Shown here in pieces: positions 28,425 to 64,000 of a DNA stretch of 64,000 nucleotides. Each line of letters starts with the position of its first letter. Within the stretch, counting starts at the first letter, position 1. Source of the stretch: Macrostomum lignano (Eukaryota); assembly GCA_002269645.1 (NCBI GenBank), contig NIVC01002068.1:62001-126000 (forward strand). The letters run 5' to 3'. The translations under genes and the position numbers were made by a program. The notes below the pieces were generated by a model. That model was not told where the DNA came from. It saw only the letters and a list, made by a program, of their open reading frames with translations, and did not search any database.

Positions 28425-29408
<984 letters not shown>

Positions 29409-34816: not shown

Positions 34817-37800
34817 ATGGTAGGTAATTGTTTGTGCAGATTTAATTATGTCAATCTAAACAATCACAAAATCGAACCAGTAATCTTCACATGGTTAGTA
34901 TATCGAAATGATATAGCTGCAAAGTGTGCATACATGTATAACTACCAAAATAATCCCCCACTCTAGACAGCCAGCCCAATAGATGCCATTGTGCTGTCTG
35001 ATACCAGCTCTTCAACAAGTGCATCTTCAGATTCATCATCTAGTACAAGTAAATCGTCACGCACATCGAAAGGTTCTGAAATTGTATGTTCAGAGGCTTC
35101 GAAAAAAGGAAAATGGCTTTTAAAACCATTTCATTCGGCCAAAGAAAAACAAGTTGGTAAACAAGGACCATCTAGCTCTATTCTGTACCGACATGTTCTG
35201 AAAGGCCGTCTGGACGACCTGCCGATCATGAACAGCCGCGTCGTGCGCATCTTCCTGTCGTCCACCTTCTCGGACATGGGAACGGAGCGCAACTACCTCA
35301 TGCAGCACGTCAATCCAAGGCTGAAAAAGTTCTGCCGTGACTCCTTCGGACTCGAGTTTCAAACCATCGACATGCGATGGGGAGTCGGTGACGAGGTACA
35401 GCTCGACCACCAGGGTCCGTACATGTGCTACCAAGAGATCGACAACTCGCTCATCATGTCAGCCGGCCCCTACTTCATCTGTCTGCTGGGTCAGCGCTAT
35501 GGCAACCAGCCGCCTGCAGCCCTTGTCGAGGTCGACGTTTTCAACAACATCGTGGAAGCGTTGAAAGAGGACGGACGCGACGTCTCGTGTCTACACGAGT
35601 GGTACACGATCGACGAGAACAACAAGCCACCAATCTGTGTCCTGAGACCGATTGCAACTCTAGCAGAGGCGGTAAGTGTGGTTTTTTACGATTATTGCAG
35701 CGCTTGTTTTTCAGAGTTTGCAACAGGATAAATTTAATAACCTCTAATCTCGTAATTCATTGTTCTAGGCGGACAAGGAGCTCTTGAAAGCTGCTCGACA
35801 GCGGTGGGAAGCTGTCCAAGACTCCATCATCGGACTCATGAAGAGAGGTGCCGAGTTGTGTCTTCAAAAGACTTTGATCTCGCACGCGACAATGAAGAAG
35901 TTCACGGCCTCTGTCACCGAGATTGAGGTGATCAGCGGAATATTGTCAAAACCTCCGCAAAAGTTGGCTCAGGCTCTCGCATTCGTGAGAGAGTTCTCTG
36001 ATCTGGAGTCTCAGCGCGACTTCTCTCGAGGAAAGATGTTCAAGTTCATCGACCTGACCGACTCTGTGAACGAAGATGGCGAGGCAGTAAAGGTTCTTGA
36101 TGAAGCTGTGAACGCGATGGTCAAGGAGTTGAACAGACACGTTCTGACTCGAATGGCGGAATCCAATTCCTTCACTTACTCACTAAAATGGACCAATGAC
36201 GCTGAGGGTGTGGGCATGAGTAGCCACAAAGACTATCTGGAAAAGTTCGGCAGCGACTACTGCGATAATGTGAAGCGCCTCGTGGCCGAATCCGTGCGGG
36301 AGAGCATGCGGCTCCGATCGGACGACCTCTACTCGGAGGTGCTGCAGCACTCGACTGCATGCGTCAACTACGTGAAGAAGTTCCAGGGTCGGCAAGAGAT
36401 CATCGACAAGGTGAAGGCTTATGTGCAAGCGAGCAACACAACGGAGCCTCTGGTGGTGTACGGCGACTCGGGCAGCGGCAAGACATCTCTACTTGGCAAG
36501 GCCGCCAGTCTGGTGCGAAGCTGGTTGCCAGAGTCCGATTCCAAAGATGCCATCGTGCTGCTGCGATTCCTCGGCACCAGTCCCGGTACGTCGAGCATTC
36601 GACAGACACTCAAGTACCTGTGCCGTCAGCTCGCTGTGTTCGGCAACGAGGACGACCAGGAAAAGTGCGAGTCACTCGACGACTTCAAGGAGATCTTGAA
36701 CACCTTCTACTCCATGCTCGAACGCATGGGCCAGTTCAGGAGAATCTTGGTGTTCCTTGACAGTGTTGATCAGCTGGACAGCTCTGACGGTGCGTACCAT
36801 CTGACGTGGGTGCGGACGCCATTGCCTGCCAACGTGAAGATGGTTGTGTCCACTCTGCCCAACATGTTCGACTTGCTGAAGACATTCAAAGGGAAGCTGC
36901 CTAACCCAGACATCTACGTGGAGGTGACGCCACTGGAGACCAGTCTGTGCACCAGCATTTTGTCGGCTCTGCTCAGCGAACAAGGTCGCACTCTGAACGA
37001 GCAGCAATGGGCTCTGGTCGAGCAGGCATTCTCCAAGTGCTCACTGCCAATCTATGTTCACCTGCTGTACCACGAGGTTCTGAGATGGCGCTCTTACCAA
37101 CAGGTGGATGAGTCGTCTCTGCGCTACACCGTTCGTCAGGCAATATTTCAGCTGTTCGAGAAACTCGAGTTGAAGCACGGCAGGCTTTTTGTAAGTACTT
37201 CGTGTTAGTTACATTAGCCCAGGCTAGTGAGAATAACCCAGAACTATCCGCCACTTATCTCTCTCTGTCAGAATGGCTCTTTCTGCTCATTTGCTTTTCC
37301 AGACCTCTCACGCCCTGGCATTCATCACTGCATCGAGAAACGGACTGTCAGAGTCGGAGCTGGAGGATCTGCTCAGTCTGGATGACGCCGTCCTCATTGA
37401 CGTGTTTCAGCATCACCTGCCGCCCTTCATCCGCATCCCGCCGATCTGCTGGGCTCGACTGCGTCACGACATTGGCTCTTACCTGGTCGAGAGAGAGGCG
37501 GACAACATCCGGGTAGTGTTCTGGTACCACCGACAGTTCATCGAGGTGGCTCAGGAGTACTTCTTGTCGGACGAAAAGACCAGACGGGACATTCACTCCA
37601 TCATGGCAGACTACTTTTGGGTCTGTGGAGCGGCAGGAGAAAGAAGTTCGTGTACCCAGCCTATCTGCGCAAGAAGCTCGTAAGTGATGAGCACTGAAAT
37701 TGATCTGTTCTCTGAACCGACTTACTGAGCCGTTTATGCATTCGTTCTCACTCCAGAACCTGCCCGAGTTCTCAATGGAGGACCGAGCCGTTCCCGAGCA

Positions 37801-40800
37801 GCCATTCGTGCTCCGCAAAGATGAGGACGGCACTGCTCAGTACAACCTGCGAAAGCTGAACGAGCTGCCGTGGCACCTCATCAAGTCCGGTCGAGTGAAC
37901 GAGTTCTACGACTACATTGTGTTTGACTACGACTTCATGTTCAACAAGCTGAAGGGCACGTCTCGGTACCTGCTGCTAAGAGACCTCGACCTCCCGCAGA
38001 AGCTCGGTGTCGAGTATATCAAAGAGGCCGAGCTCGTGTACAATGCAATCCGACTCTCCGCTCAGAGTCTCGTATACGACCCTGTCAATCTGAGCGTTGA
38101 TCTCATCGGTCGGCTCATCATGTACGAGAAGGACTGTCCTCGAGTGAAGCTGCTGCTCAACCAGTGTCGCCAGTCGAAACAGGCTCTCAGCAACTGCTGC
38201 CTCATCCCGAAGGTGCAGTGCTTCGACTCCGGGTCTGGAGTTCTCTACTCCAGCTTTGATCTCGGACTCGGAATGGGACTGGTCATGCCCAACGGTCAGC
38301 TGGTGTCCTTCTCACTCATCAACAACGAAGTCACCTGGTACGACATCGAGGGAAATGAGATCAAACGGTTCAGCTCCGACTACAACCTGTTCCTCAGCAT
38401 GAAGTACATGTCGACTGGATACATCCCAGACGACTGCGTAATGCACGTGCTATCGATGCGCTCGAAGAATGCCGGTGTCACCGAGGACGACAGACAAGCG
38501 CTTGTCCTTAACATGGGTCGGAAGAAGATCCAAGAGGAGATCGAAGAATACGAAGCGTGCAACAAGGATGTGCCGCAAGAGCTGCGAGACATGATGGAAT
38601 CGCTCAACGCTGGAGAGATTCCAGACAGCATCATGGAGAAGCTGGACGTAGACGGGATGATGAAGAAGATGATGTCTGGAGAGGAAGAGGCGCAGAAGTC
38701 GCAAGATCTCGTTCGAGTCGACTTCATGAACGGCAGGGTGACGAAACTGATGACTCTGGACCCATCATGGAGTGTGTCATCTGATGACGTAGAATATGTG
38801 ACAAAGGACTATGTGCTTTGTTGCAAGGGAAAGAGTGACTCAACGGGAACAAGCACTCTTAGACTGCTGTCAATCGGAGAGAAGAAGTTCGTTACTCTTT
38901 ATGACGAAGAGACAAGTGGAACTTCAAATATTGGCACCCAAAACCTCGACGGCAAAAGCAATCTGTTGTGCTTCTGTTTGGACATAAATGATAAGGCGTC
39001 TTCATTGTTGGTGGTTATGAATTTGGTGACTAGAGTGACTTCTCGGTTATATTTTTCTGAAAATTTCCAGTCCATGGACAAAGCTGATCTTAAACGTATG
39101 TGGCGCATGGACTCATGGTCAAGCTCTGCAAAAGCTGTGTCGGACAACTCGAGCTCTTTAAATCTACTATTAAGTGCCGAAAAAATTCGAGCAAATGCTT
39201 GCCTTTTTGGCCCCAAAGGAGATATTGTCGCAATGATAACTGCCACTGGAGAGACTAATAATAGAGATGTTGAGTCGCGAACGTTTTTCGTCGTTTTTTG
39301 TACTTGTGGGTCTCTCAAACCTGTTCACATAATAGATTTGAATACTGTTCTCGAAGTGAAATATTCGCAAAACTTTGCAAGCGCCTCCAGAGAGAGGTTA
39401 GCCTTTCTTTTGAAAAAGCGAGCCAAATTGACTGACGCGCAACAGGAACCAATTCGGGGAGTCATATTCGATGTTGCAGCGCGAAAGGCGACTCCACTGA
39501 GGATTACTCAGGCAAACAGCGAGTTTAAATCTGCAGTTTCGGCATTTGGTGACGGAACTCAAGCAAAATTTACGGAAGATGAAAAGCTCCTATTTACTTC
39601 TGGCACTAAAGTTCTGCTTCTAGTTTGGTCAGTTGAATCAGGTGAACTCATCAGAGGCATTCGAATGGGATCGGCTGAGAGTTTTTTATCCGGTCAGCCA
39701 AGGGGTACCGATTTTTTTACCATCTGCCATTTTCCCGATGAGTCGGCCGGTGACACTGACGAGCGAATGTACATCATGGCTAAGGTGTACAATACCAAGT
39801 CATTTCACGATGCGTCAATTAGAGAGGAGTCTGCCGTCATGCTTCCAAAATTTACCCAGAGAAGGCAAGCACGTTGCGCTGTATCGCTAACTAACAAATA
39901 CGAAGTCGATATCATAGGTAAGGAGACAATTAGTATAAACATTCGCGAAAAGTCTTCGAATACGCTTGATCAAGATGAAGAAAAGTGCGTCCTTTCCACT
40001 AAGCCCCAAATTGAAGTTCGTTGCCGACCCGGACAAAGAGAGGTCACGACGATTGTTATACGCGATTCTGATCTGATTGAGTCGTTATTCGGTGCCAATG
40101 ACGAACAACCGAAGTCTAAGAATGAGAGCAAAGATGTATTTGGAGTTCGATTTACTGTTGCTTCAGAGCATCCCAATGAGGATCCCACAAGGGAACAGCA
40201 ACGCTGCGCCCTTCAGACGACAGCAAAAGCTAATATGATGAATACCAAGTTCCTTCAATCGCCGATTTTGTCTGAAGACAACATACTAGACATTGTCTTT
40301 ATAAACGAAGCGAAGAAGTTGCTAATTACAATTAGGCTTACACTGCAGGACATTAAAGAGAGCTATTTATCAGTCATCAGACTCACAACTCTCAGAGGGT
40401 GCAGGTACAATCTTTCCGATTTGAGCGACCAATTTGGACTAAGTGCTGACTCTTTTGACAAAGTACTATCAAAAAGCTTCATGAAAAAATTTAACCACAT
40501 AATATTTCCATCTGAAGCTACCATTCGTGCCGATGAAGCAGAGGATGAAAATTTGGAAACGCGGCAGGACTTTACAAGTCAAAACCGACAAGAAATGATA
40601 GCGGACTTCATTAACAAGCGGATGTCAAAAAGAAACGACCTTGTCGACATTCAGTTCCTGCCAGAGAAGTGTACACTCAACCTGGCCTTCAGCCAACACC
40701 TCAAAGCGTCCGAGGAGATTCGCGTCGGCGTCGGAGTTCCTCCGATTTGGCTCGGCGCGGTTGTGCGCCTCGACTACAGCGACGTGGAGAAAGGAACTCC

Positions 40801-41477
40801 GACCAGCGAGATGCAGTTCCAGCACTCCATCGGCAAAGTGTTCGACATGGGACCCGCAGTGGCCTTCCTCCACGACAACCAGCACCTGGTCAACTACAAG
40901 CTTCAGATTGTGGACTACATGAAAGGCGAAGTGATCCGCTGTCTCAGTCAGGACGAGGACTTGTACTTTGTTAGATTGCAGGCCACGCCAGACTGCAGCC
41001 TGCTTGTTGGCCAGGTGTACTTTCCCGCCTACGAGGTGGAGTTCGCCGTATTCGATGACGAATCCATGAACAATTCGGACATGTTCGCAATTGTTCCACC
41101 TCGAGGCTTGCAGGTAAGATTTAGTAAATTTGTTGTTTTTACTACTTATAATTCCGGATACTGGTGTAGAGTTCGGATCTTCACAGTTTTGCACCTCATT
41201 GCCCGATCTTGCTCAGGTGTACCGTATATCAGACGGTTGTCGCGTTGCTAACTACCTGTTTGAGTCAGACCCCGTTGGCTTCTGCCTGATCGGTGAGGCC
41301 GGGCGGGACCTTCTGGTTCTCACGCACAATGCGCCCATTATGCTGTTTGAGCTGCTTGACCCAACTGAATCAAACTCTCCCGGCTCAACCTCATCTAAGC
41401 TGTCGACCCCTGATTCGTCAAAAACTGAGTCCCATGCGACGGAATCGCAACCCCGCCGATGCTGTACCTGCCTCTGA
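34817..41477 (+). CDS. NWD1/NWD2-type STAND protein: DUF4062-like + NACHT + degenerate beta-propeller (~2,040 aa). One apparent 1-nt frameshift at 37615-37618.
   Basis: Exons 34817-34819, 34967-35671, 35769-37190, 37303-37679, 37757-41113 and 41217-41477, all with GT-AG boundaries. N-domain [18 protein letters not shown]...DMRWGV; Walker [10 protein letters not shown]; Walker [11 protein letters not shown]; winged-helix [21 protein letters not shown]; [13 protein letters not shown]; WD-like [13 protein letters not shown]. Confidence 0.88.
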
Positions 41478-43984: not shown

Positions 43985-45148
43985 TAATCGGTAGTCTACC
44001 CTAGTATTTGGTATTCTACACTAGCTAGTCGGTAGTTTACCCTAGTATTTGGTATTTAACACTAGCTAGTCGGTAGTTTACCCTAGTATTTGGTATTCTA
44101 CACTATAGCTAGTCGGTAGTTTACCCTAGTATTTGGTATTTTACACTAGCTAGTCGGTAGTTTACCCTAGTATTTGGTATTCTACACTAGCTAGTCGGTA
44201 GTTTACCCTAGTATTTGGTATTCTACACTAGCTAATCGGTAGTTTACCCTAGTATTTGGTATTCTACACTAGCTAATCGGTAGTTTACCCTAGTATTTGG
44301 TATTCTACACTAGCTAATCGGTAGTTTAACCTAGTATTTGGTATTCTACTCTAGCTAATCGGTAGTTTACCCTAGTATTTGGTATTCTACTAGCTAATCG
44401 GTAGTTTACCCTAGTATTTGGTATTCTACACTAGCTAATCGGTAGTTTACCCTAGTATTTGGTATTCTACACTAGCTAATCGGTAGTTTACCCTAGTATT
44501 TGGTATTCTACACTAGCTAGTCGGTAGTTTACCCTAGTATTTGGTATTCTACACTAGCTAGTCGGTAGTTTACCCTAGTATTTGGTATTTTACACTAGCT
44601 AGTCGGTAGTTTACCCTAGTATTTGGTATTCTACACTAGCTAGTCGGTAGTTTACCCTAGTATTTGGTATTTTACACTAGCTAGTCGGTAGTTTACCCTA
44701 GTATTTGGTATTTAACACTAGCTAGTCGGTAGTTTACCCTAGTATTTGGTATTCTACACTAGCTAGTCGGTAGTTTACCCTAGTATTTGGTATTTAACAC
44801 TAGCTAGTCGGTAGTTTACCCTAGTATTTGGTATTCTACACTAGCTAGTCGGTAGTTTACCCTAGTATTTGGTATTTTACACTAGCTAGTCGGTAGTTTA
44901 CCCTAGTATTTGGTATTCTACACTAGCTAGTCGGTAGTTTACCCTAGTATTTGGTATTTTACACTAGCTAGTCGGTAGTTTACCCTAGTATTTGGTATTC
45001 TACACTAGCTAGTCGGTAGTTTACCCTAGTATTTGGTATTCTACACTAGCTAGTCGGTAGTTTACCCTAGTATTTGGTATTCTACTAGCTAATCGGTAGT
45101 TTACCCTAGTATTTGGTATTCTACACTAGCTAGTCGGTAGTTTACACT
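43985..45148. repeat. 41-bp minisatellite (~28 copies)
   Basis: Unit CTAGCTAGTCGGTAGTTTACCCTAGTATTTGGTATTCTACA. Confidence 0.97.
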
Positions 45149-45583: not shown

Positions 45584-46156
45584 GTTCCTCTGCTTCAGAC
45601 AACTCTTGTTGCCTAGGTCTCAGGTAGAAATCGCTGCTTTAATACGCTTAGCCGCGGACTGACTGCTGCATCTCTATCCCCCTTCCAACCCCAGCCATCG
45701 CCCGCCCCGGTTTCCGCCCCTCTGTCCAGAGCCACGGGATGCTGGACCCTCTCCATCGATCCAAAAGCGACGCAAATTGCAGCTTAAATTTTTTAGAATT
45801 GGACCGGCTGCAGAAGTATTGCAGATTAGACAATCGCATTGCTCTGAGTTTTTTTCTAATAGTGGAGAGAGAGAGAGAGAGAGACAGAGCCTGCCCTGAG
45901 CGTTTTTGATCTGATGCCTAATTTAGAGCCAGCTGCAGTTCATTCTGCCCATATGATCTCTGTTGCTCTCGGTGCTGAGATGGGATCAGAATTGTCCCCT
46001 GGCCTGCTCTGCTGGTCTCCAACACTTCTTGCCTTTCGTATTGCAATCTTCATTGAGAACACTGTGGGCCTGCTGCTCAACAAGTGTCGCTGTTTGTTTG
46101 ACTTTTCATCGAATCAGAACAGTTTCATCTGATATTTTTCGAGTTGAGTATCAAAC

Positions 46157-47365
46157 AGAGTGACTCAAGGGAGTGAAACAGAGTGACTGAGAGAGTGAAA
46201 CAGAGTGATTGAGAAAAGTGAAACTGTGTGACTGAGAGAGTGAAGCAGAGTGACTGAGAGAGTCATACAGAGTGACTGAGAAAAGTGAAACTGTGTGACT
46301 GAGAGAGTCATACAGAGTGACTGAGAGAGTCATACAGAGTGACTGAGAAAGTGAAACTGTGTGACTGAGAGAGTCATAGAGAGTGACTGAGAGAGTCATA
46401 CAGAGTGACTGAGAGAGTCATACAGAGTGACTGAGAGAGTGAAACTGTGTAACTGAGAGAGTCATACAGAGTGACTGAGAGAGTCATACAGAGTGACTGA
46501 GAGAGTCATACAGAGTGACTGAGAGAGTCATACAGAGTGACTGAGAGAGTCATACAGAGTGACTGAGAGAGTCATACAGAGTGACTGAGAGAGTCATACA
46601 GAGTGACTGAGAGAGTCATACAGAGTGACTGAGAGAGTCATACAGAGTGACTGAGAGAGCCATACAGAGTGACTGAGAGAGCCATACAGAGTGACTGAGA
46701 GAGTCATACAGAATGACTGAGAGAGCCATACAGAGTGACTGAGAGAGTCATACAGAGTGACTGAGAGAGCCATACAGAGTGACTGAGAGAGCCATACAGA
46801 GTGACTGAGAGAGTCATACAGAATGACTGAGAGAGCCATACAGAGTGACTGAGAGAGTCATACAGAGTGACTGAGAGAGCCATACAGAGTGACTGAGAGA
46901 GTCATACAGAGTGACTGAGAGTGACTGAGAGAGTCATACAGAGTGACTGAGAGAGCCATACAGAGTGACTGAGAGAGTCATACAGAGTGACCAAGTGAGT
47001 CATGCATACAGAGTGACTGAGAGTGACTGAGGAGTCATACAGAGTGACTGAGAGTGACTGAGGAGTCATACAGAGTGACTGAGAGTGACTGAGGAGTCAT
47101 ACAGAGTGACTGAGAGTGACTGAGAGAGTCATACAGAGTGACTGAGAGAGCCATACAGAGTGACTGAGAGAGTCATACAGAGTGACCAAGTGAGTCATGC
47201 ATACAGAGTGACTGAGGAGTCATACAGAGTGACTGAGAGTGACTGAGGAGTCATACAGAGTGACTGAGAGTGACTGAGAGAGTCATACAGAGTGACTGAG
47301 AGAGCCATACAGAGTGACTGAGAGAGTCATACAGAGTGACCAAGTGAGTCATGCATACAGAGTGA
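46157..47365. repeat. 22-bp minisatellite
   Basis: Unit GAGTGACTGAGAGAG(T/C)CATACA, with a more complex higher-order pattern after ~46900. Confidence 0.96.
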
Positions 47366-47836: not shown

Positions 47837-50800
47837 TCAGCTGGCCCCCTGCTGGCTCAGGTACTTCGTCACCAACGAGTCGGCGTACTTTCTAGCGCTG
47901 GCGGTCAGCTCCCGAGCCTCGGCGTAGTCGCGAAGATGATTCCAGCGGGTGTCACTTCTGCGAGCAGTGACAGATCATTGGAGTGACAGATCATTAGAGT
48001 GACAGATCATTGGAGTGACAGATCATTGGAGTGACAGATCATTGGAGTGACAGATCATTGGAGTGACAGATCATTGGAGTGACAGATCATTGGAGTGACA
48101 GATCATTGGAGTGACAGATCATTGGAGTGACAGATCATTGGAGTGACAGATCATTAGAGTGACAGATCATTGGAGTGACAGATCATTGGAGTGACAGATC
48201 ATTGGAGTGACAGATCATTGGAGTGACAGATCATTGGAGTGACAGATCATTGGAGTGACAGATCATTGGAGTGACAGATCATTGGAGTGACAGATCATTG
48301 GAGTGACAGATCATTGGAGTGACAGATCATTGGAGTGACAGATCATTGGAGTGACAGATCATTGGAGTGACAGATCATTGGAGTGACAGATCATTGGAGT
48401 GACGGATCATTGGAGTGACAGAATACTAGAGTGAAAGATCATTGGAGTGACAGATTACCTGAGTGACAGGTGACAGATATCAGAGGGACAGATTATTAGA
48501 GTGACAGATGGCTGGCTAACGCAGCGGCCTCACCTCCCAGTCTCGCCGCCAGCCCCCGACTCCAGAGACAGTCTAGGGACGGCGCTCGATGTCGCGCTCC
48601 CGACGGCAGCGCCGGCGCCGCTGCGGAACGAGTTCATGGCCTCGAGACCTTGCAGGATGTTCGTCATGGACGAGGCTGCGCTGCGCCTTGGCTGCTGCAG
48701 CTGCTGAGCTGCCGGCGGCCGCCACGAGGGCTGCGGATTTTGTGGCGCCGCGGTTGACGAAGCCATCGCCGGCACCGACGGCGACGCAGCTGTCGACGCG
48801 GCGGCGAGTCGCTTAATTTCCGACGAATGAGCGTCGCGAAATTCGGCCCGAAGTCGTTCGACAATGCTGCCGCCACTGCCGCCGGCTCCAAAACTTCCGG
48901 TTCGAATTGGTCGGCGAATCTGCGGCTGTTGTCGACTTTGAAAAACCGACTGTTGTGTCTGCTGCTGCTGCTGCTTCTGCTGCTGCAATTGCTGAAGCCG
49001 CTGAATTGGCACCGGCCGCAGTTGCCGCCGGCGGGACTCCGACATCGGCTGCTGTTGCTGCTGCTGCTGCTGCGGTTTTGGCGTTGCTGGCGGCGTCTGC
49101 ATCCGCGTCAGGAAGCCGCGCACCCTGTCGGAGATTTGCTCGTCCTCGGCGCTGCGCTGCAGCCGGGGCGCCGGAGGCGGCGTTGTGGGCTGCGGCTGCT
49201 GCTTCTGACGCGGCGGTGGCGGCGGTGGCTGTGTCGCAGGGGGCGCCGGTTCATAGGCCGCAGTCGATGGCTTCGCCGAGGTTCCGGTAATGCTCATCTA
49301 AAATTGCGTAGCTCCGACATTATTTGAAACAATTAGTAATATGTTTTTAATAAGATTCAACTTAAATCAGCTGCCAAATGGTAGCATTGTTAAAAAATGT
49401 TAGATAAATAGGACTTGAACCTGTTACAGAAAATCAAAATGTGTAAGACATGTTAGACAGTATCTTAACACTGTTAGACAGAGTCGGGAACTGTCAGACA
49501 GAATCGGCAACTGTTAGACAGGATAGGCAACTGTTAGACAATATCTGTAACTGTTAGACAGGATAGGCAACTGTTAGATAGTATCTGTAACTGTTAGACA
49601 GGATCTGTAACTGTTAGACAGGATAGGCAACTGTTAGACAGTATCTGTAACTGTTAGACAGGATCTGTAACTGTTAGACAGGGTCAGAAAAGTTCCCCAG
49701 CAAGTTATTAAAAGCAGAAATTCAACACATTCTCAAACCTCCAGCGCCCGCTGCAGCCTGCTCGGCCCCGCAGTGGTTCTGCATGCTGGCTGCTCAACCG
49801 CGGCCACTCTTGGCGTCGTCATTGTCGATGCGGTCGCCGTGGTCGTCGGCAGCTTCGTGGGCGCGGCGAAATTGACGGCGGCGGCAGCGACGGCCGCTGC
49901 CTGCTGACTGCCGACCAGATGCTGATTGGCCACCTCCCTGCGGAGCCGCATCAGCTCGGTCTCCAGCGCCACCAGCTGCTGTCCCAACCGTCCAGCCTCC
50001 TGACGCTCCATCGCGCCGGCCTGAACGCTGAGCGACGTCTCCCGCATCTGCTGAGCGAGGCGACCGTTCTCCGACTGCATCGACTGCAGCTGCCGCTCCA
50101 GGCCGGCCAGGCGGCCCTCCAGGCCGCGCATCTCCAGCTCGTCGCATTCGATCTTGGATTTGAGCTCCAGGTTCTCCCGGCGGGTGGCCTCGAGCACCTG
50201 CCGGTCCTCCTCCATCACCAGCTTCAGCTCGCTCGCCTGAAATAAAGAATTTGGCGGATTTTCGTTGCGCGGCTTTGAAAAATTGATTTTGTGAAATCTT
50301 GTGACACTTTGATCTTGTGACACTTTGATCTTGTGACACTTTGATCTTGTGACACTTTGATCTTGTGACACTTTGATCTTGTGACACTTTGATCTTGTGA
50401 CACTTTGATCTTGTGACACTTTGATCTTGTGACACTTTGATCTTGTGACACTTTGATCTTGTGACACTTTGATCTTGTGACACTTTGATCTTGTGACACT
50501 TTGATCTTGTGACACTTTGATCTTGTGACACTTTGATCTTGTGACACTTTGATCTTGTGACACTTTGATCTTGTGACACTTTGATCTTGTGACACTTTGA
50601 TCTTGTGACACTTTGATCTTGTGACACTTTGATCTTGTGACACTTTGATCTTGTGACACTTTGACACTTTGATCTTGTGACACTTTGATCTTGTGACACT
50701 TTGATCTTGTGACACTTTGATCTTGTGACACTTTGATCTTGTGACACTTTGATCTTGTGACACTTTGATCTTGTGACACTTTGATCTTGTGACACTTTGA

Positions 50801-53012
50801 TCGTGTGAACCTTTGAACCGGGGATTTTCGAATGGTGGCTACTGCCTGCTTTTAAATCAAAGCCCTCAAAGCTGCATATGTAAAAGCGCAAGCAGACTCA
50901 GACCCTACCTGAAAGTCGCCTTTCTCCACGGCAACCATAAGGTCGCTCTTGGTTTGCTCGTTTAGACGCCTCAGCAAGTCGAGCTGGTCGGCCATGGCCT
51001 GCACCTCTCGCTGCTTCTCGTACAGCTGGAAATGGGATTTGGGATCAGTACTGAGATTGGGATTTGGGATTAGGGATCAGAACTGAGATCGGGATTTGGG
51101 ATCAGAACTGACATTGGGATTTAGGATTTAGGATCAGTACTGGAATTGGGATTGGAATCGGGATTGGGATCAAGGTATAGAATTATGACATTGGACTCGG
51201 CATACATGTTAACTATTAAAACTTGAGTATTGAGAACCTGCAGCGCGTGACCCAGCTGGAACTCCAGTCGCTTGTCGCTTGATTAGTGTGAACTCATTTT
51301 TAAAGCTACCCCTCACTCCTGGTCTCACTAGGTGCTCACATTTTCATTGAGTTGTCGGCACTCCTCTCTCAGTTGAGTCTCCAGCTGCCGCTGGTTCGAC
51401 ATCTCCTTGAGCCGTTCGACCTCTTCCTCGCGCTGTGCCGCCCAGCGGGCCCGGACCTCTCGCAGCATGGAGCCCGGCTGCTGCTGCCGGCGCTGCAAGC
51501 CGACATCATCGAAGTCGTCCTGGGATCCGACGCCCGGATCGTAGCACGGATCGTCCTCGAAGAAGATTCCGCCGTCTCTGAGGACTGCCTCATCATTGAA
51601 GCCGTTGCTGCCGTCCCCGCCGCGATAATCGTAGGCGGCGTCGTCTGCAGGATAAGCGGACACCGGGGCGGAGGCCGCCGCCTCTCGGTAATAGTAGCGA
51701 TTGTAGTCATCCACGTCATTCTCGACAGCGGCTGGTGGCGGAGGTGCTGCAGTCTGCGGAGCGGACAGGGATCTTATTTGCGGCAGTGGCTATTTTAAGC
51801 CTGTTATTTCGATTTATAGATCTGTTAACAATAGATGCTCGAATAATATACATTTCTTTTATCCGTAAAGTTTTGATTCTATAGGAGTCAAAAAAGTCCT
51901 CAAAAAGTTGTAAAATCTTTGCGTAAGCAAAAAAGGAAAAAATGCAATCTCCGCCGTGCTTTTGCTCCAGAAAACTGTGGAGAAGGTTTCCTTGAAGTAG
52001 AGTAAAGCTTTTCGGGTAGGAGAGTAGATTTCGATCGCTTTCGAGGAAATATGAAAGGTTTCCAGGAAACAGAATAGGTTTTCCGGAAAGAGAATAGATT
52101 TCCTGGAAACAATAATAGGTTTCCAGGAAATGGAATAGGTTTCCAGGAAATGGAATAGGTTTCCAGGAAATGGAATAGGTTTCCAGGAAATGGAATAGGT
52201 TTCCAGGAAATGGAATAGGTTTCCAGGAAATGGAATAGGTTTCCAGGAAATGGAATAGGTTTCCAGGAAATAGAATAGGTTTCCAGGAAATGGAATAGGT
52301 TTCCAGGAAATAGAATAGGTTTCCAGGAAATGGAACAGGTTTCCAGGAAATGGAATAGGTTCCTAAATTAATTTCTAGAAAATGAAATAGATTACTAGGA
52401 AATTAATCAGGTTTCCAAGAAATGGAATAGTTTTCCTGGAAAAGGAATAGTTTTCCAGGAAATAGAGTACGTTTCTATGAAACGGTATCGGCTTCCAGGC
52501 CTATATTATGCGGATTGGATGGCTACAAAGAACGGTGAGACAGCATCAGCAGGTACCTGATAAGTCGTCAAGCTGCTCCGCACTCTGGCGATCAGGTCAA
52601 GCGTTGACGGCTGTCGCTGATCTTCGTCGCCAATCGCCGACGACGCAACTGAAGCTTTGCCTGTCGCCTTCTCGACTGGCGCTGCAGCCGCCGCCGCCGC
52701 CGGCAGCTTTTCGATCGAGCCGCCGCTGGCAGTTGGCCGCTTCTGCCGGCTGCCGCCGAAAGCAATGCGGCGCAGCTGTTCCTGAAACGACAGCTCAGCC
52801 GTTGGTGCGTCAGGTTTCTTTGTTGCAGACTGCGACTGCGCTGGCGGCGGCGGCTGCTGCTCCGCTCTGGTTGGCCTCGGCGGAGGCGGTGGCGTCGGCG
52901 GCTGCTGCTGCGGGAACTCCAAGCAGCCGCTGTCGTCCGGCTCATCCTGATCGACTTCGTCCGCTGGCTCGGAGTCCAGTCGCAGGCGCAGCTCGCTGAC
53001 TCTGGACGCCAT
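47837..53012 (-). CDS. Six-exon, 789-aa low-complexity / coiled-coil protein of unknown family
   Basis: Exons 53012-52557, 51753-51340, 51025-50909, 50236-49739, 49297-48534 and 47957-47837. All introns are GT-AG with consistent phases (0,0,0,0,2). Central heptad-rich coil (EEEVERLKEM...LETELMRLRREV); C-terminus WNHLRDYAEARELTASARKYADSLVTKYLSQQGAS*. Confidence 0.85.
47967..48450. repeat. 16-bp minisatellite in intron 5 of the coiled-coil gene
   Basis: Unit GTGACAGATCATTGGA. Confidence 0.97.
49460..49682. repeat. 20-bp minisatellite in intron 4
   Basis: Units AACTGTTAGACAGGATAGGC / AACTGTTAGACAGTATCTGT. Confidence 0.9.
50296..50802. repeat. 16-bp minisatellite in intron 3
   Basis: Unit GATCTTGTGACACTTT. 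Confidence 0.97.
51033..51172. repeat. Degenerate GGGATT-based repeat in intron 2
   Basis: Repeated GGGATTTGGGATCAG(T/A)ACTGAGAT motifs. Confidence 0.75.
52055..52470. repeat. 20-bp minisatellite in intron 1
   Basis: Unit GGAATAGGTTTCCAGGAAAT. Confidence 0.95.
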
Positions 53013-54369: not shown

Positions 54370-54782
54370 AACCTAAAAACAGACTTTCTAATTCCTAGAA
54401 ACAGACTTTCTAATTCCTAGAAACAGCCTTTCTGATTCCTAGAAACAGTCTTTCTGATTCCTAAAAACAGACTTTCTAATTCCTAGAAACAGCCTTTCTG
54501 ATTCCTAGAAACAGACTTTCTGATTCCTAAAAACAGACTTTCTGATTCCTAGAAACAGTCTTTCTGATTCCTAGAAACAGACTTTCTGATTCCTAAAAAC
54601 AGACTTTCTGATTCCTAGAAACAGTCTTTCTGATTCCTAGAAACAGACTTTCTGATTCCTAGAAACAGACTTTAGGATTCCTAGAAACAGACTTTCTGAT
54701 TCCTAGAAACAGTCTTTCTGATTCCTAGAAACAGACTTTCTGATTCCTAGAAACAGATTTTCTAAATCTATTCCTAGAAACT
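54370..54782. repeat. 22-bp minisatellite
   Basis: Unit TTCCTAGAAACAGACTTTCTGA (period checked at 54481/54503). Confidence 0.95.
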
Positions 54783-55234: not shown

Positions 55235-56821
55235 ATGCAGGAGATTATCACCATCCACATTGGTCAGTGCGGCGTCTGCGTCGGGCTCAAGTACTGGGAG
55301 AGCCTGGCCGACGAGCACGGCCTGGACTGTCAGGGCCGGTTTGTTGGCTCCAGCCCGTTGCAGCTTGAAAAGATCGGCGTGAACTTTGCGGAGTCGCAGT
55401 CGGGCCGGCACTCGCCCAGAGCTGTGTTCGCCGATCTGGACTCCACCAGCGTGGCCGCCCTGTCCGCCAGCTCCTGCACCGGCCTGTTCCGGCCGGACAG
55501 CCTCATTGAAGGCACCGGGGAGGCCGCCAGCACATACGGGCGCGGCTACGACTCACCCGGAGCCAAGGCGATGGCCGAGTCAATTCTGACCTCCGTTCAG
55601 CGACAGCTCGAGCTGAGCGATCGAGTCCGCGCGGTTCACATCGTCCACAGCCTGGGCGGCGGCACCGGCTCCGGCCTGACCAGCCGCCTGCTCCAGCAGG
55701 GACTGTCCGGCGTCCCTGTGCACACCTTCAGCCTGTTCCCCGGCCAGCCGGCCATCATCGAGGCTTACAACGCCACCCTGTGCGCGCCGCACCTGGCCAG
55801 CAGTGCCGAGATCACCTACTGCTGGGACTTGGCCGGCCTGCGCGCGGCCAGCGAACGTCCAAAGCCGGACATTGAAGACGTGAACCGGACAGCGGCCAAC
55901 ATGATGCTGGGCCTGACTGCCTGCGTCCGGTTTCCTGGACAGCTAAACCTCAGTCCGGGCAAACTGGCCAGCGCGCTGGTGCCCCTGCCCAGGTGAGAAC
56001 TCGTTTGAGAGAAATTTGAGTTCAGAATGGAGACTCAATATTAGCATTGGCTGGCATTGTAGTTAAGATTGTATAGGTGTAATTCGAACTCCTTAAAGGT
56101 AAGGATTGGTTTCTGAATCCACGCTTGTACGCTTCGTCAGCTCTTCTCCCCCTCGGTTTTACGCTCGAAGTTTCACTTAGCTCCAATAAAGAAATTCTCT
56201 CCGCGTTCGTCTCTCGCTAATCTAAGTATTGAATATATTAGACATCGAAAGCTGAAATTCTACAGGTTACTAAAGATTAAGGTGCTTTCAAGGTGCTCAA
56301 AGGCTGATTAACAGTGTCGGACTCGTTTCCGCAGGCTGCACTTCCTGTTGTCCTCGCTGGGCTGGGGCTCCACGCACGGCAACTCGGTCCGTGAGCTCTC
56401 TGCTCGGATGCTGAGCCCGGAGGCGCAGCTGGCGGCCTGCGACCCCTCGGCGGGCCGCATCCTCTCAGCGGCCGGCATCTTCCGCGGCCGGGTGCCAATC
56501 CAGGCGCTGGACTCAGCGCTCACCGACCTTCGGGCGCGTCGCGAGGCCGTCTTTCCCAATTGGCTGACTCACGCCTTCTCAACCGGCGTCTGCGACATTC
56601 CGCCGCGCGGCGAGACCGTCTCGGCGGCTTTCTTTGTCAACTCGAGCTCCACAGCTAACCTGGTTGAGCAGCAAGCTACCCAGGTGCGCAAACTGTTTGC
56701 CAGCGGGAGGGCCTTCTTCCACCTGTACCAGCAGGAGGGCATCACCGAGGGCGACATGAGCGAAGCTCTGGACGAGTGCGACCGGCTGTGCAGTCTCTAC
56801 CGCGAGACCGCGACTGCCTGA
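55235..56821 (+). CDS. Highly divergent beta-type tubulin lacking the acidic C-terminal tail (exons 55235-55992 and 56335-56821; 414 aa)
   Basis: Tubulin signature HSLGGGTGSG plus GQCG, DEHG, PRAV, FRPD, YNATL, RFPGQLN, VPLPR|LHF, AACDP, FRGR and the beta-specific CDIPPRG. Phase-2 GT-AG intron. The protein ends at YRETATA*. Confidence 0.9.
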
Positions 56822-57162
56822 GCCGCGCACCCAGCGCATAATTTTGTTTAAAACAGGGTATGAAAACTAAAAAAGTCTGGCTGAGTTGGGTAAATTTGGA
56901 TGCAAAGCGTCATCTGGAGTAAAACAATAGACGGCTCAAAGCAGAGAGCGAAACGCTCCATTCGTTTCTTTTTCAATTTTCAAACTGTTTTCTCCGCGTT
57001 TAGTCTTTTATTTGACAATACTGGTGGTCTTGCCAGGAAAAGAGCTGCTGAATAACGTGAACTTGTCTAATGACTTGTCCAATGGGCACTTAAGGAGCAT
57101 CTTTACCAATGGGGAGAACTATCAACAGAACCAAAGACATCTTTATGAGTGAGAGGACATTT

Positions 57163-57641
57163 CCAACAGTTTGGGAACATGTCTAACAGCAGTTTGGGAA
57201 CATGTCCAACAGTTGGAGAGCATGTCTAACAGTTTGGGGACATGTCTAACAGTTTGGGAACACGTACAACAGTTCAGGAACATGTCTAACAGTTTAGGAA
57301 CATGTCTAACAGTTTGGGAACATGTCTAACAGCTGGCGAACATTTACAACAATTTGGGGATATCTTCAAAAGTTTGGGAACATGTCCAACAGTTTGGGAA
57401 CATGTCTAACAGTTTGGGAACATGTCTAACAGTTTGGGAACATGTCTAACAGTTTGGGAACATGTCTAACAGTTTGGGAACATGTCTAACAGTTTGGGAA
57501 CATGTCCAACAGTTTGGGAACATGTCTAACAGTTTGGGAACATGTCTAACAGTTTGGGAACATGTCTAACAGTTTGGGAACATGTCCAACAGTTTTGGAA
57601 CATGTCCAACAGTTTTGGAACATGTCCAACAGTTTGGGAAC
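57163..57641. repeat. 20-bp minisatellite
   Basis: Unit AACAGTTTGGGAACATGTC(T/C). Confidence 0.95.
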
Positions 57642-58449: not shown

Positions 58450-61400
58450 TCAGATATCTGGCTGCTGGCTGTCGCACTGCGCCTTGTAGCGCAGCAGGCA
58501 CTGCGCCAGGAACTCGATCGGGTCCACGGGCCTCGCGTTCGCTACCTCGGCCATTGAGCTGGCCAGTGCTGGCTCTGGAATGAGAAAATGGGGGGATTTT
58601 GTAGTGCTCAACGTGTTCCATAGGGTAAAGACTCTCAAGACACCGCTCTCTGAGGAGGCTGGAAACACCGCCTTCTGAGCAGGACTCTGAAGACAATACT
58701 CTGGGAGAAGGACCCAGAAGACACCACTGTGGGAAGGACTTTGGGGACACCAATGTGGGAAGGACCCTGAAGACACCACTCTCTGGGAAGGAATGAAGGA
58801 ATCTGAAGGCACAATGTATGATTATCAAGAGGTCACGATTCACACACAACTGCCATAGCGTCGAGGCCGGTAGGCCGAGACGCGGTAAGGCAGTTGTGTG
58901 TGAAGCGTGAACTCTCGATAGTGGAATTGTGTCTAGTTTCGTCCAAAAACCAATTCAAAATGGCTAGGACACAACTTCCCAGACGGGAATTGTTCACTGA
59001 GTGATTCTAGGGATTTGTGTCATAGGCATTTTCCACTTGGCGCAAGCCAGATGATGGCCATAGACTAATCGTCTGGAACGAAAAGTTAAGCGGAACAGTC
59101 TGAAATTACCATAGACGAAACATGTTAAATGAAGTTGTGGTCTTATAAGCTGGAACCAGGGACAACTAAAACCCTCGGGACGCGAAACGAGCCAATTCAT
59201 GGCAAAAAATCTGAGGGGCTCGCTTAAAAGTATTGTTCTATGGCTTTTTCAAGTCTTCTCTGCTATCAGGCAAATTAAAATTGCTTTAGCTGCGGCCAGC
59301 AGTGAAGCTAAGCTGAACTATATCAAGAGAAGCATTTTTTATTCACTTGATGAAATGCCAAGAAAGTGCAGCGTATTTCCGTGCTCGTCAAATTACAACT
59401 CTGAAGCCGTTCGAACACGGACATTTGCGTTTCCCAGAGATCCACAGGAGCGAGAGCGATGGAGAAAGGCGCTGCCAAATATTCTCCAGGTAAGAAACCA
59501 GATCATTTGCTGTCATTACTGCTGCATAATTCCGCTTCAATTCTGCATGCCAGTCTCGTCCAAACAACTTGAAACCCAAAATTTATTATTTTAGAGAGTG
59601 ACTGACAATATGGGCGTGTGCGTAAAGCATTGGCCAAGCGATGCTCCAATGTTCAAGAAAAACTCTACCAAAAGGCCAATTAATCCTCCTTCTGTTTTTA
59701 ATGGAGTTCCTAGCTCGTGTTTTGTTCAGAACCAAGGTACGTAACTTAAAGATTGCTCAACACTTAGCGTCTATATCGATTTTGCCGCTCACAATTATCT
59801 TACTTTTATTTTTACTCTTATTTTAGACCAGGACCGACAGGCCGAAAAGCGCGGTGTTCTTTCTGACGCGAGGTGCAGCGACATCGATGAGATGGACGCT
59901 TTTCAGCTGCTTGATTTTTTGCCGGCATGGGAAAGTTTTCGAGCTGAGGTGAAAAAATTCGGATGTCGTATCTCGACATGCACTGAATACAGCTATTCTG
60001 AACGAAGATGTTTACTTGTTTACGTTAGATAAAGATGGAGACCTGTCTGTTCGAATTTTTGTCTCACCTAACTTTCTGATTCGTGCATTCAAACTGCATA
60101 CACCGATTTCGGTTCGAGACTTGTTGGGATTTCAACCGACACTCAAGCGCTCGTCAAAAAAAAATCCCACCAATACCGACGACATCCCATGATAGAAAGC
60201 TTCGGAAGTTAGATTTCCGAAGAACTTTCGAAGCTTTCTATCATGGGATGTCGTCGGTATTGGTGGGATTTTTGACGAGCGTCTTACTAGTCCTTTGAAA
60301 AAAACGTTGGCTAGCCGACGGGACACACTGTCCATGCTGAACGCTGGCTGGAATGCTCGTCTCTGATATCAAATCTGTTCCTTTGATGCCTGCCTTCTTT
60401 AGTCGCTGTATAACCTGTCAATTTCCAATAAAGCACGGTTTGAATTGTTTTTATGAGATTGTGTAAAACCTCGTGAATTAAATTTTAATTAATATCCAGC
60501 TTACCTGCGATATAGTAGAGCGAAGCCATCTCCGAAATGGAAAGCTCCTCTGATTTAGCAGCACAATTATCAATGGTCGCCAGTTCAATTTCATTCAGCT
60601 GTTCATTGCAACATTTGCTCCGATCGTGCTTGTAGTCTGCTAATTCAAGGGATGCCAATAATTTCATTCGTCGGAGTCGAGCACTGAGCAGCACTTGCTC
60701 CACAGATACATAGTAGTTGCCGCCGCTCATTTGGCGATATACGCCAGCCAGCCAGCCAGAACGTAGCTGATTCGTGGGTCGGACAAAAGAACCTCACACA
60801 TCTCACAGGCTCCGCGCAGTGAGTTTACTAGCGCTGACTTGGTCTCGGGCGTCAATGAATGATGGCGAGCTCGGCCTTTTCCACAATGTGTCGAATCAAA
60901 CGAATCCGCGAGCGCGCTAAGAAATTGTATGCTTTCATCTTGAACGGAATAGACTGGTCGCCTGTCCGGATCCCGTAGTCGTGCGTGTAGATCAGGATTT
61001 TTACAATTGACAATTTTCCAGAATCTCACTATGGTTTTGATAAATTCCGCAGTGTCTGAGTATCCATCACACTTCAATGCAGCGGCAACCCTTTCATCGA
61101 GAACTTGAAGAGCGAGACTGACTTTAGTTTTCTGAGTGCTTGTGGGATAACAGGCCTCATGAGTTAGACATGTGCGCTTGACTACGTGGTCTTTCTCCAT
61201 TTGGTACAGGCGTACCACGTCTGACCATTTAGCGGATATCTGTCTGTCAGCGCCAGGAGGTTGAATGCTTAGAATTCCATTCGCTTCCATTTGCCAATTG
61301 TTGCGAATGCATTTGATAATGTGAACGAAATCGAACAGCATGAAGAATTCCGACTCCTGTGCAGCATCCGTTCCAATCCATGGCTTCTCTCTTCCATCGC

Positions 61401-64000
61401 TAAATAAAGCAAAACACTTGCGGTTGGTAGGTTGATTGTCGCTGACGAGAGCAACGACACGGCCACCGTTGTTGTTAATTGCTTTAATACATTGGCTGAC
61501 GCATTTTCGCAGAAACTCCGCAGACAAAATGTATGTCGGCAATAGTCGGACTACAAACGGTTTTCCACCAAGTAATGGCTTTACCATTATGGCCAAAATT
61601 GTCCTAGCAACCTGGTCCGGATCGTCGACGGCTCGACCCAGGTGACGGCATCGATATCGAACGGACGGTTGTATGTACATTTCGTCAAACATATTACGCA
61701 GTTTCGCTGAGCTCCTGATAGACTAGCAAAAACTGACTGGATCACATCGACTGCGTCGGTTTCTGTGCCAACTTCTCCTGTACCTGCTAGTTGCAGCTGC
61801 AGCGTTCGGGGATGAGGCAATGGCAATAGCTTCCGTAGGTAAGAGTAAGCCGAACTACTGATCAAGTAGAGCAATGCTGACTGTCGCACTAGTGAAATGT
61901 CATAGCGGCGATTGTTCCGATTTACTAATGTAAGGCTAAGTTGTCGAATCAAAAACTGAAGCGACCGATCCAAATCAGAGTCAGAATCTATATCATCACT
62001 GATTCTACTAACAAACGCTTCGACTTCACGTTGGGGATTGGCGTCGGAATTTTTGCACCGCACGACAACAGCATCCAGTTGCGACCAGCGCTTGAGTGTC
62101 GGTTGAAATCCCAACAAGTCTCGAACCGAAATCGGTGTATGCAGTTTGAATGCACGAATCAGAAAGTTAGGTGAGACAAAAATTCGAACAGACAGGTCTC
62201 CATCTTTATCTAACGTAAACAAGTAAACATCTTCGTTCAGAATAGCTGTATTCAGTGCATGTCGAGATACGACATCCGAATTTTTTCACCTCAGCTCGAA
62301 AACTTTCCCATGCCGGCAAAAAATCAAGCAGCTGAAAAGCGTCCATCTCATCGATGTCGCTGCACCTCGCGTCAGAAAGAACACCGCGCTTTTCGGCCTG
62401 TCGGTCCTGGTCTAAAATAAGAGTAAAAATAAAAGTAAGATAATTGTGAGCGGCAAAATCGATATAGACGCTAAGTGTTGAGCAATCTTTAAGTTACGTA
62501 CCTTGGTTCTGAACAAAACACGAGCTAGGAACTCCATTAAAAACAGAAGGAGGATTAATTGGCCTTTTGGTAGAGTTTTTCTTGAACATTGGAGCATCGC
62601 TTGGCCAATGCTTTACGCACACGCCCATATTGTCAGTCACTCTCTAAAATAATAAATTTTGGGTTTCAAGTTGTTTGGACGAGACTGGCATGCAGAATTG
62701 AAGCGGAATTATGCAGCAGTAATGACAGCAAATGATCTGGTTTCTTACCTGGAGAATATTTGGCAGCGCCTTTCTCCATCGCTCTCGCTCCTGTGGATCT
62801 CTGGGAAACGCAAATGTCCGTGTTCGAACGGCTTCAGAGTTGTAATTTGACGAGCACGGAAATACGCTGCACTTTCTTGGCATTTCATCAAGTGAATAAA
62901 AAATGCTTCTCTTGATATAGTTCAGCTTAGCTTCACTGCTGGCCGCAGCTAAAGCAATTTTAATTTGCCTGATAGCAGAGAAGACTTGAAAAAGCCATAG
63001 AACAATACTTTTAAGCGAGCCCCTCAGATTTTTTGCCATGAATTGGCTCGTTTCGCGTCCCGAGGGTTTTAGTTGTCCCTGGTTGTATTGAATAAAAAAT
63101 ATCCTCACAAACGCATTGATACAGGAATATACAGATTGCTTTTCTGCAAATGGGTATATCCAAATATAACCCGTTGGGAATATCCAAAGATGGGGGGCGG
63201 CTTGACCATGGACTATTCGCAGATAAGCAATCCCTGTTTCGATGCCTGAAAGGCGCGCAAAAATTTACTTAGTTCACAATTTCCGTCGACGCAATCGTTT
63301 GTGGCCCAAACGAAACTAGACACAATACTGAGGATTCTGAAAATCCCACTGGGATGAAATATTAAAATAAAATCAGTAATTTCCCTCAGCGAAGAATCCC
63401 AACTTCAATTAAGCCTTCCGGAATACATCTAGGGCAATAACGCTTATTAACTACCACGTATTAAGATGTAATCAACAACCCCTTGAATCTCACTCAGCAT
63501 GTCCAGGTATTCCGGTCTTGGACCAGGTGCTTTCGCCGGCGAACCTACACTCGAGTCTACATTCGCCGTTGCATCGATCGCCTTCATCGAGTGCATCTGG
63601 GCAGCTCCATCAGCAGCAACTAGCGGTTGCGGGTCGTGAAGCTCAAACAGCATGATTGGTGCGTTATGCGTCAGCACCAGCAGGTCCCGACCATCTTCCC
63701 CAACCAAGCAGAGTCCGAAAGGATCCGACTCAAACAGGTAGTTTGCAACGCGGCGTCCATCACTGATTACATAGACCTGGAGTGCAGAAATTAAACGCAG
63801 TCATTGAGAAAAGGCATCTTTAGATCGGATTCTTATAAGCGTAAGCATTAAAAGATTTGCCATTCCCTATAACAATCGTTGCTAATCTTACCTGCAAGCC
63901 TCGAGGTGGAACAATTGCGAACAGGTCCGAACTGTTCATGGATTCGTCATCGAATACGGCGAACTCCACCTCGTAGGCGGGAAAGTACACCTGGCCAACA
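58450..64000 (-). CDS. 3' part of a second NWD-type STAND paralogue (exons >64000-63892 and 63776-63494, plus predicted last exon 58574-58450 encoding a Dpy-30-like motif)
   Basis: 64000-63892 matches 41005-41113 with 2 mismatches in 109 nt, and the next exon is homologous to exon 6 of copy 1. Phase-1 donor GTGAGA at 63493 and phase-1 acceptor TTCCAG at 58575 give EYLDMLKPALASSMAEVANARPVDPIEFLAQCLLRY. The last-exon link is a prediction. Confidence 0.75.
58821..58922. other. ~100-nt long-stem hairpin (tiny MITE or pre-miRNA-like)
   Basis: 34-bp arms with 4 mismatches (core TTCACACACAACTGCC / GGCAGTTGTGTGTGAA) and an inner GCGTC-GGCC stem. Confidence 0.55.
59154..60151 (+). repeat. Inverted copy of the transposon 5' kilobase (upstream region, THAP exons, start of exon 3)
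   Basis: Reverse complement of 62087-63084, both 998 bp. THAP ATG at 59355 mirrors 62883. Confidence 0.95.
60148..60281. repeat. Near-perfect palindrome at the junction of the inverted duplication
   Basis: CGCTCGTCAAAAA..ATCCCACCAATACCGACGACATCCCATGATAGAAAGCTTCG and its reverse complement flank a ~24-nt loop. The arms differ only in A/T-run length. Confidence 0.93.
60290..62883 (-). pseudogene. THAP + P-element (THAP9-like) transposase pseudogene
   Basis: THAP C2CH finger (MPRKCSVFPC...W...CVKHW...PSVF) split by GT-AG introns. Core motifs AYSYLRKLLPLPHPRTL, FDEM, DNQPTN, FDFVHIIKCIRNNW, KVSLALQV, YRQMSGGNYY, YYIAG|Y. Frameshifts near 62283, 61688 and 60745; 3' end truncated at the 60148-60281 hairpin. 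Confidence 0.9.

Follow-up and report, generated by a model that had tools for sequence, protein, structure and literature searches.

Our study examined a 64,000-nt stretch of the Macrostomum lignano genome (assembly GCA_002269645.1, contig NIVC01002068.1, positions 62,001 to 126,000; hereafter the window) and found that two of its minus-strand exons, 63776-63494 and 58574-58450, are very probably the last two coding exons of one NWD1/NWD2-like STAND nucleoside triphosphatase (NTPase) gene that ends in a Dpy-30 tail. This gene is referred to below as copy 2, and a paralogue elsewhere in the window as copy 1; positions are those of the window and are collected in Table 1, in which, as in the text, a slash marks an exon–intron boundary.

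The join between the two exons was examined signal by signal. The donor GT lies at 63493-63492 on the minus strand, as a preliminary description of this DNA had proposed when it placed a GTGAGA donor there in the phase needed by the downstream exon, and both the coordinates and the phase were confirmed. The acceptor CCCCCCATTTTCTCATTCCAG/A (CCAG) puts the start of the terminal exon at 58574, and joining in phase 1 gives ...GPRPEYLDML-K-PALASSMAEVANARPVDPIEFLAQCLLRYKAQCDSQQPDI followed by the stop. The penultimate exon encodes the invariant Tyr of the Dpy-30 motif (Y16 in the tail alignment) together with the first helix turn, and is itself preceded by the acceptor ...CACTCCAG; the position of the intron that follows the antepenultimate exon is homologous in the paralogues. 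The earlier proposal that the penultimate exon supplies the start of the motif (EYLDML-K-PAL) was borne out by two public M. lignano proteins that end in the same junction, UniRef100_A0A1I8HEY0 and A0A1I8JGR1 (P0032 and P0182 in our protein set), cluster mates that are both named 'NACHT domain-containing protein'. Both terminate in ...GPRPEYLDMLKPALASSMAEVANARPVDPIEFLAQCLLRYKAQCDSQQPDI, which is the predicted EYLDML-K-PALASS junction, and the penultimate exon matches their C-terminal region. The window join is identical to them at 165 of 171 positions, with 100% identity in the 41-residue tail. Translation through the donor reads ...EYLDMLSEIQGVVDYILIRGS and ends in DYILIRGS followed by two stop codons, in agreement with the ending that had been predicted for an unspliced transcript. 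Splicing of the Dpy-30 exon to some other upstream exon had been named as one outcome that would refute the join, and no credible alternative phase-1 donor or upstream coding exon was found between 64000 and 58575. A second CAG lies 6 nt within the Dpy-30 exon (58567-58574, minus strand; CAG/AGCCAG/CAC) and could act as an in-frame alternative acceptor, giving ...EYLDML-T-LASS..., which is 2 residues shorter.

The tail is a bona fide Dpy-30 sequence. The Pfam family Dpy-30 (PF05186), for which the gathering cut-off is 22 bits, scored 35.0 bits on the terminal exon alone, the exon to which the motif had originally been assigned, and 34.4 bits on the joined peptide, the scan that had been suggested as a check. 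When the join was compared with PDB sequences using phmmer, its alignment with human DPY30 spanned the junction (PrpeYLDm-lkPaL against PtraYLDqtvvPiL, E 5e-6). A chance test used a profile hidden Markov model built from homologues only, namely three M. lignano paralogues, two trematode proteins and DPY30, and a null set in which each GT of the window, on either strand, that had an open frame before it was joined in phase 1 to the Dpy-30 exon. The true donor added 6.0 bits over the exon alone and ranked 6 among the 2312 joins (z about +4.3), and it was the sole high scorer that lies upstream on the correct strand with a consensus donor closing a conserved coding exon. AlphaFold2 was applied to the tail of P0182, in which 1 residue is different from the window join; the model had a confidence (pLDDT) of 84.4 and placed helices at residues 14-34 and 39-56. 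Its top PDB matches were the dimerization/docking (D/D) domains of DPY30 (4RIQ, 6E2H and 3G36; root-mean-square deviation 1.5-1.6 Å over 43 columns, TM(target) 0.72-0.80), after which axonemal Dpy-30 proteins and PKA RIIα ranked in the Foldseek search.

The intron that interrupts the motif was also found outside the window. C-terminal exons were mapped onto four genomic loci, two from M. lignano (L002 and L003) and one each from the trematodes Schistosoma spindale (L004) and Calicophoron daubneyi (L005), and in all four the split codon occupies the same alignment column as the K of the window, after the Y-L-x-x-L turn. The upstream exon encodes the invariant Tyr of the motif in every homologue of the tail alignment, and the phase-0 intron one exon further upstream (…Q/[AV][YF]…DG) is likewise conserved. 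Judged from this comparison of sequences, the phase-1 intron that splits the Dpy-30 motif is ancient. The GenBank annotation of L002 and L003 was built from a genome-guided RNA-seq transcriptome (PMC5730564), so that for the paralogues the removal of this intron has RNA evidence behind it.

The Dpy-30 tail appears to be conserved across the flatworm subfamily, strongly in several Macrostomum paralogues and more weakly in trematodes. A0A1I8JGR1 combines DUF4062, NACHT, HTH_NWD1 and Dpy-30 in its Pfam set, and Pfam-significant C-terminal Dpy-30 matches occur in at least three further M. lignano paralogue groups (P0036; P0038 with P0185-P0189; and P0041, P0190 and P0191). Scores in P0182, P0036 and P0038 ranged from 32 to 36 bits. 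The trematode homologues from C. daubneyi (P0035, 13.8 bits) and S. spindale (P0037, 12.8 bits) gave sub-threshold Dpy-30 matches in the right place, where Dpy-30 was the best or second-best Pfam match of the C-terminal 150 aa; given these sub-threshold scores, only a Dpy-30-like motif is claimed for them. No Dpy-30 was found in the non-flatworm NWD1/2-like homologues. The public proteins themselves came from an exhaustive HMMER search with the large exon of copy 1, which returned P0032 at 76% identity. A word-indexed protein search had been empty for the 171-aa join and had listed no M. lignano protein for the NACHT exon; both outcomes are treated as false negatives, as HMMER returned the proteins.

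The intron between the two exons had been described as 4.9 kb long and filled with transposon sequence. It measures 4919 bp, of which 3931 bp, or 80%, are one P-element/THAP9-like DNA transposon remnant. Its domains follow the canonical order of that superfamily, with a THAP-like N-terminus, the P-transposase helix–turn–helix, RNase H-N and the GTP-binding insertion. Tnp_P_element (30.7 bits), TNP-like_RNaseH_N (27.9) and TNP-like_GBD (39.6) passed in Pfam, and THAP reached 19.9 bits, under its cut-off of 23.9. The remnant differs from the superfamily in that its first 1002 nt recur, inverted, in place of its 3' end, and in that it has arms of 1002 nt and no short terminal inverted repeats with an 8-bp duplication; no target-site duplication of 2-10 bp flanks it. 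The transposase frame is broken, since the open reading frames 61587-62222 and 60727-61692 overlap in different frames. Lacking a duplication, having 1002-nt arms and a broken frame, the element is therefore a rearranged remnant rather than an autonomous transposon. The arms differ by one mismatch, at 60152 near the inner end, and their junction shows GCGCT microhomology, while the palindrome where the inverted arm ends inwards resembles a scar left by rearrangement. Neither the transposon end nor the intron sequence outside the transposon was found again elsewhere in the window or in L002 and L003. The non-transposon remainder is about 1 kb; the mean M. lignano intron is 1.1-1.4 kb (PMC5730564), so that without the transposon the last intron of copy 2 would be near that mean. 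Under the proposed history, the intron has grown in this haplotype from a few hundred bp to its present length, with most of the growth owed to the decayed 3.9-kb element and the 1-kb inverted duplication of its own 5' end. A transposon-swollen intron of this kind is unremarkable for a repeat-rich genome.

Table 1. Features of copies 1 and 2 in the window, and the corresponding intron at four homologous loci
Feature	Position	Strand	Description
Antepenultimate coding exon, NWD-like copy 2	63892..64000	-	Runs off window end; donor CAG/GTAAGA, phase 0
Penultimate exon, copy 2	63776-63494	-	94 codons + 1 nt; ends ...GPRPEYLDML
Last intron, copy 2	58575..63493	-	4919 bp, phase 1; donor A/GTGAGA, acceptor TTCTCATTCCAG/A
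Terminal coding exon, copy 2	58450..58574	-	(K)PALASSMAEVANARPVDPIEFLAQCLLRYKAQCDSQQPDI and stop; Dpy-30 helix 2-loop-helix 3; stop TGA 58452-58450
P-element/THAP9-like DNA transposon remnant	59154..63084	-	Same orientation as host gene; 3931 bp; Pfam
5' arm of transposon (gene orientation)	62083..63084		1002-nt inverted repeat partner
Inverted copy of the transposon's own 5' 1002 nt	59154..60155		In place of the 3' end
Palindrome	60160..60273		51-nt arms; inner junction of inverted arm
Further intron repeats	58621..58920		26-28-nt tandem array 58621-58780; 38-nt inverted repeat 58823-58920
Paralogue copy 1	34991..41477	+	DUF4062 + NACHT + NWD1-type winged helix + 1138-aa exon
L002, M. lignano			DADYLRRL + A/GTGAGT ... 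CTCCAG/AC; split codon N; intron 198 bp
L003, M. lignano			DYLSYV + C/GTGAGT ... TTTTAG/GC; split codon R; intron ~298 bp
L004, S. spindale			DYFEESGL + A/GTAAGT ... ACAG/CT; split codon T; intron 2164 bp
L005, C. daubneyi			DYLEQSGL + A/GTAAGT ... ACAG/GA; split codon R; intron 2343 bp

Several observations weigh against a single Dpy-30-tailed STAND gene at this locus. The N-terminal domains of copy 2 lie beyond position 64000, outside the window, and only its last three exons fall inside, for which reason the label 'STAND' given to it in the preliminary description stands through the domains of its public counterpart and not through N-terminal exons of its own. The public proteins that carry the junction are gene models of another assembly. 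Adding the upstream exon brought no rise in the Pfam Dpy-30 score, because the YLD...P spacing is one residue short. Finally, the transposon lies in sense orientation with splice signals of its own and 1-kb inverted arms, and could disturb splicing.

The last of these points bears on the possibility that the transposon cripples the last intron in this haplotype, leaving copy 2 mostly truncated without Dpy-30, whether by read-through to DYILIRGS or by splicing into the transposon, and on its way to becoming a pseudogene. The GT/AG sites of the 3.9-kb sense-oriented element would favour such an outcome, as would the 1-kb hairpin expected in the pre-mRNA. Also in its favour are the arms, whose identity at all but one of 1002 nt points to a recent event, and the adjacent paralogue, copy 1, from which the Dpy-30 exon is already missing. 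This explanation is nevertheless quite unlikely, as the two splice sites, the polypyrimidine tract and the two reading frames have all been preserved, the tail retains its full identity to the public proteins, and annotated trematode genes process introns of 2.2-2.3 kb at the same position. An intron of 4.9 kb is long against the species mean given above, but not extreme (PMC5730564). With the donor, the acceptor and both frames intact, normal cis-splicing should still give a Dpy-30-tailed protein from the transposon-bearing haplotype.

The size and shape of the intron could also be in part an artefact of assembly, with the 1002-nt inverted arm and the palindrome representing a long-read foldback chimera, which would leave the gene structure unaffected. 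The arms are near-perfect, there is no target-site duplication, a palindrome sits at the inner junction, and M. lignano has a repeat-rich genome that is difficult to assemble (PMC5730564). The single mismatch near the inner end and the GCGCT microhomology at the junction argue for a genuine rearrangement instead. P-type and hAT-type elements make such internal inverted rearrangements through template switching during gap repair. The inverted-arm structure may be either a template-switch rearrangement or an assembly foldback, and we regard a contribution of the assembly to the intron as unlikely. There is only a very slight chance, lastly, that the Dpy-30 exon is a separate small gene, either with spliced-leader (SL) trans-splicing at 58574 and translation from the internal ATG of MAEVANARPVDPIEF... 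or with an upstream exon since lost, the fit to the STAND exon being a coincidence. In M. lignano, 38.8% of genes undergo SL trans-splicing and there are polycistronic units (PMC5730564), and an in-frame ATG does follow seven full codons of the exon. Such a gene, however, would encode a 34-aa product without helix 1; it would leave unexplained the identical join in the public proteins, the position and phase of the intron shared by four homologous genes, the invariant Tyr in the upstream exon of every homologue and the rank of the true donor in the chance test, and no other upstream exon is available. The reading of both exons as the end of one NWD-like gene therefore remains the preferred one.

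Copy 1, on the plus strand, and copy 2 are arranged tail to tail. The Pfam matches of copy 1 comprised DUF4062 (38.3 bits), NACHT (40.7 bits, with the P-loop GDSGSGKTS) and HTH_NWD1 (34.5 bits), and its NACHT and winged-helix exons are 99-100% identical to P0032/P0182. No Pfam family, including WD40/beta-propeller families, matched its 1138-aa exon, which is homologous to NWD1/2-like proteins mainly over its first ~250 residues. The last exon of copy 1 (41217-41477, plus strand) ends in ...RRCCTCL and a stop without a Dpy-30 exon, and a tblastn search of the window (E 10) found no second Dpy-30 exon that could serve it. The antepenultimate exon of copy 2 has 97% nucleotide identity to its counterpart in copy 1 (41006-41113). 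The penultimate exons of the two copies are about 80% identical in DNA as far as LFEL(L/H)DP and unrelated from there on, copy 1 running for a further 38 codons to its stop. This pattern, in a comparison of 40900-41480 (plus) with 63490-64000 (minus), suggests that gene conversion may have acted upstream of an old breakpoint within the penultimate exon.

Further features of the window were also recorded. A divergent beta-tubulin-like gene of at least two exons (55235-56821, plus strand) is convergent with the Dpy-30 exon; it matched Pfam Tubulin at 114 bits and Tubulin_C at 61, and its best PDB matches were beta-tubulins at only ~175 bits over 253 aa. A 28-bp satellite (CTGCATTCCTATGGGTGCTCAGATACCT) fills positions 1-7472 with about 267 copies at 91% match, and leaves all three plus-strand frames open, producing sham open reading frames of up to 2507 aa. 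In addition, (ATCT)n is repeated 246 times at 28425-29408, and a dozen minisatellite arrays with units of 16-44 bp were seen (10180-10831, 13770-14222, 27213-27816, 42357-43094, 43984-45145, 46151-47352, 47966-48455, 50296-50816, 52039-52499, 54372-54763 and 57157-57641), of which the 16-bp array at 50296-50816 lies within an open reading frame that reads as repeats of KCHKIKVSQDQSVTRS. These arrays are consistent with published findings that simple repeats are unusually abundant in M. lignano (PMC5730564).

The closest known counterparts of the flatworm proteins are human NWD1 and NWD2 and the wider DUF4062 (TeTIR/'NIR')-NACHT family that includes TEP1 and NPHP3. Copy 1 and the public counterpart of copy 2 share with them the N-terminal DUF4062, a NACHT domain with its Walker A motif (GDSGSGKTS) and the winged helix of NWD1 type, and homology continues past the winged helix. 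The C-termini differ, as the flatworm proteins carry Dpy-30 whereas the non-flatworm homologues have none and roughly half of them terminate in a CaaX box. Such a box was found in 51 of the 102 non-flatworm NWD1/2-like homologues of at least 1000 aa (P0047-P0197), with endings such as KSKTCSIM, CVVM, CLIQ and CHLL, among them proteins of nemerteans, annelids, molluscs, a brachiopod, a starfish and a nematode. No link of NWD1 to prenylation was found in the literature. The terminus of copy 1 (RRCCTCL) is CaaX-like, possibly by chance. With CaaX in half of the homologues and Dpy-30 in flatworms, the C-terminal tip of the family looks like a localization tag.

Comparison of the tail with known Dpy-30 and RIIa domains showed it to be closest to DPY30, the COMPASS/MLL subunit (3G36, 4RIQ and 6E2H), with 49-51% identity over 43 columns, the same helix-loop-helix and the RP-x-DPIEFL core. 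DPY30 is, however, a stand-alone protein of ~100 aa, whereas the flatworm motif is the tail of a STAND NTPase of ~1900-2000 aa and lacks one residue between YLD and the Pro with which helix 2 begins. The next-best matches in sequence and fold were AK7, NME5, DYDC1/2 and Chlamydomonas RSP2, large enzymes and structural proteins with a terminal Dpy-30 docking module in axonemes, although none of these is a STAND or NACHT protein and the present data hold no evidence for a ciliary role of the flatworm protein. The D/D domain of PKA RIIα, which binds AKAP helices, belongs to the same class of X-type bundle and was matched by Foldseek; the tail gave a weak match to Pfam RIIa (14.3 bits), under its threshold, and is of the Dpy-30 type rather than the RIIa type.

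By analogy with these proteins, the tail of copy 2 may act in dimerization and docking. The protein would run from an N-terminal DUF4062/TIR-like domain through NACHT, the NWD1-type winged helix and a long propeller-like region to the C-terminal Dpy-30 D/D module. As in the Dpy-30/RIIa family, two tails would pair as an X-type four-helix bundle, which would keep the STAND protein as a C-terminal dimer and offer a groove for the amphipathic helix of a scaffold. The sequence and the predicted fold are compatible with both the pre-dimerization and the AKAP-like docking that had been suggested for this protein, and docking or localization seems to us somewhat the more probable role compared with mere pre-dimerization. 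The tail would then be an address tag at the site of the CaaX box common in non-flatworm NWD1/2-like proteins. It is possible, though we hold it to be rather doubtful, that flatworm NWD-like STAND proteins swapped the CaaX tag of most other animals for Dpy-30, and so came to sit as dimers not on a membrane but on an axonemal, COMPASS-like or other scaffold that presents an amphipathic helix. The inverted pair in the window would then hold one tail of each type, and docking would add a second layer of control over STAND oligomerization.

The gene model is not new, as UniProt already holds the spliced protein as an unreviewed entry. Our literature searches found no paper describing the NACHT/NWD-Dpy-30 architecture, and nothing relevant on NACHT or NWD1/2 with Dpy-30 or on Macrostomum NACHT proteins. 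DUF4062, which occupies the effector position of STAND proteins, has the TIR-like NADase fold; TEP1 shows the activity, whereas in NWD1/2 it is weak or undetectable (bioRxiv 10.64898/2026.05.01.722283 and 10.64898/2026.09.21.753143). A search of these two preprints for Dpy-30 and flatworms found no mention of either. For annotation, the locus teaches that a single transposon can swell a conserved short intron about 20-fold with the exon retained. STAND/NLR switches are usually pictured as an effector, an NTPase and sensor repeats, and a helix pair of the RIIa D/D class at the far C-terminus lies outside that picture. Because the NADase fold of DUF4062 was shown only in 2026, how such proteins are localized and restrained is a live question, for which the Dpy-30 tail and, in other phyla, the CaaX box found in its place are testable handles on localization.

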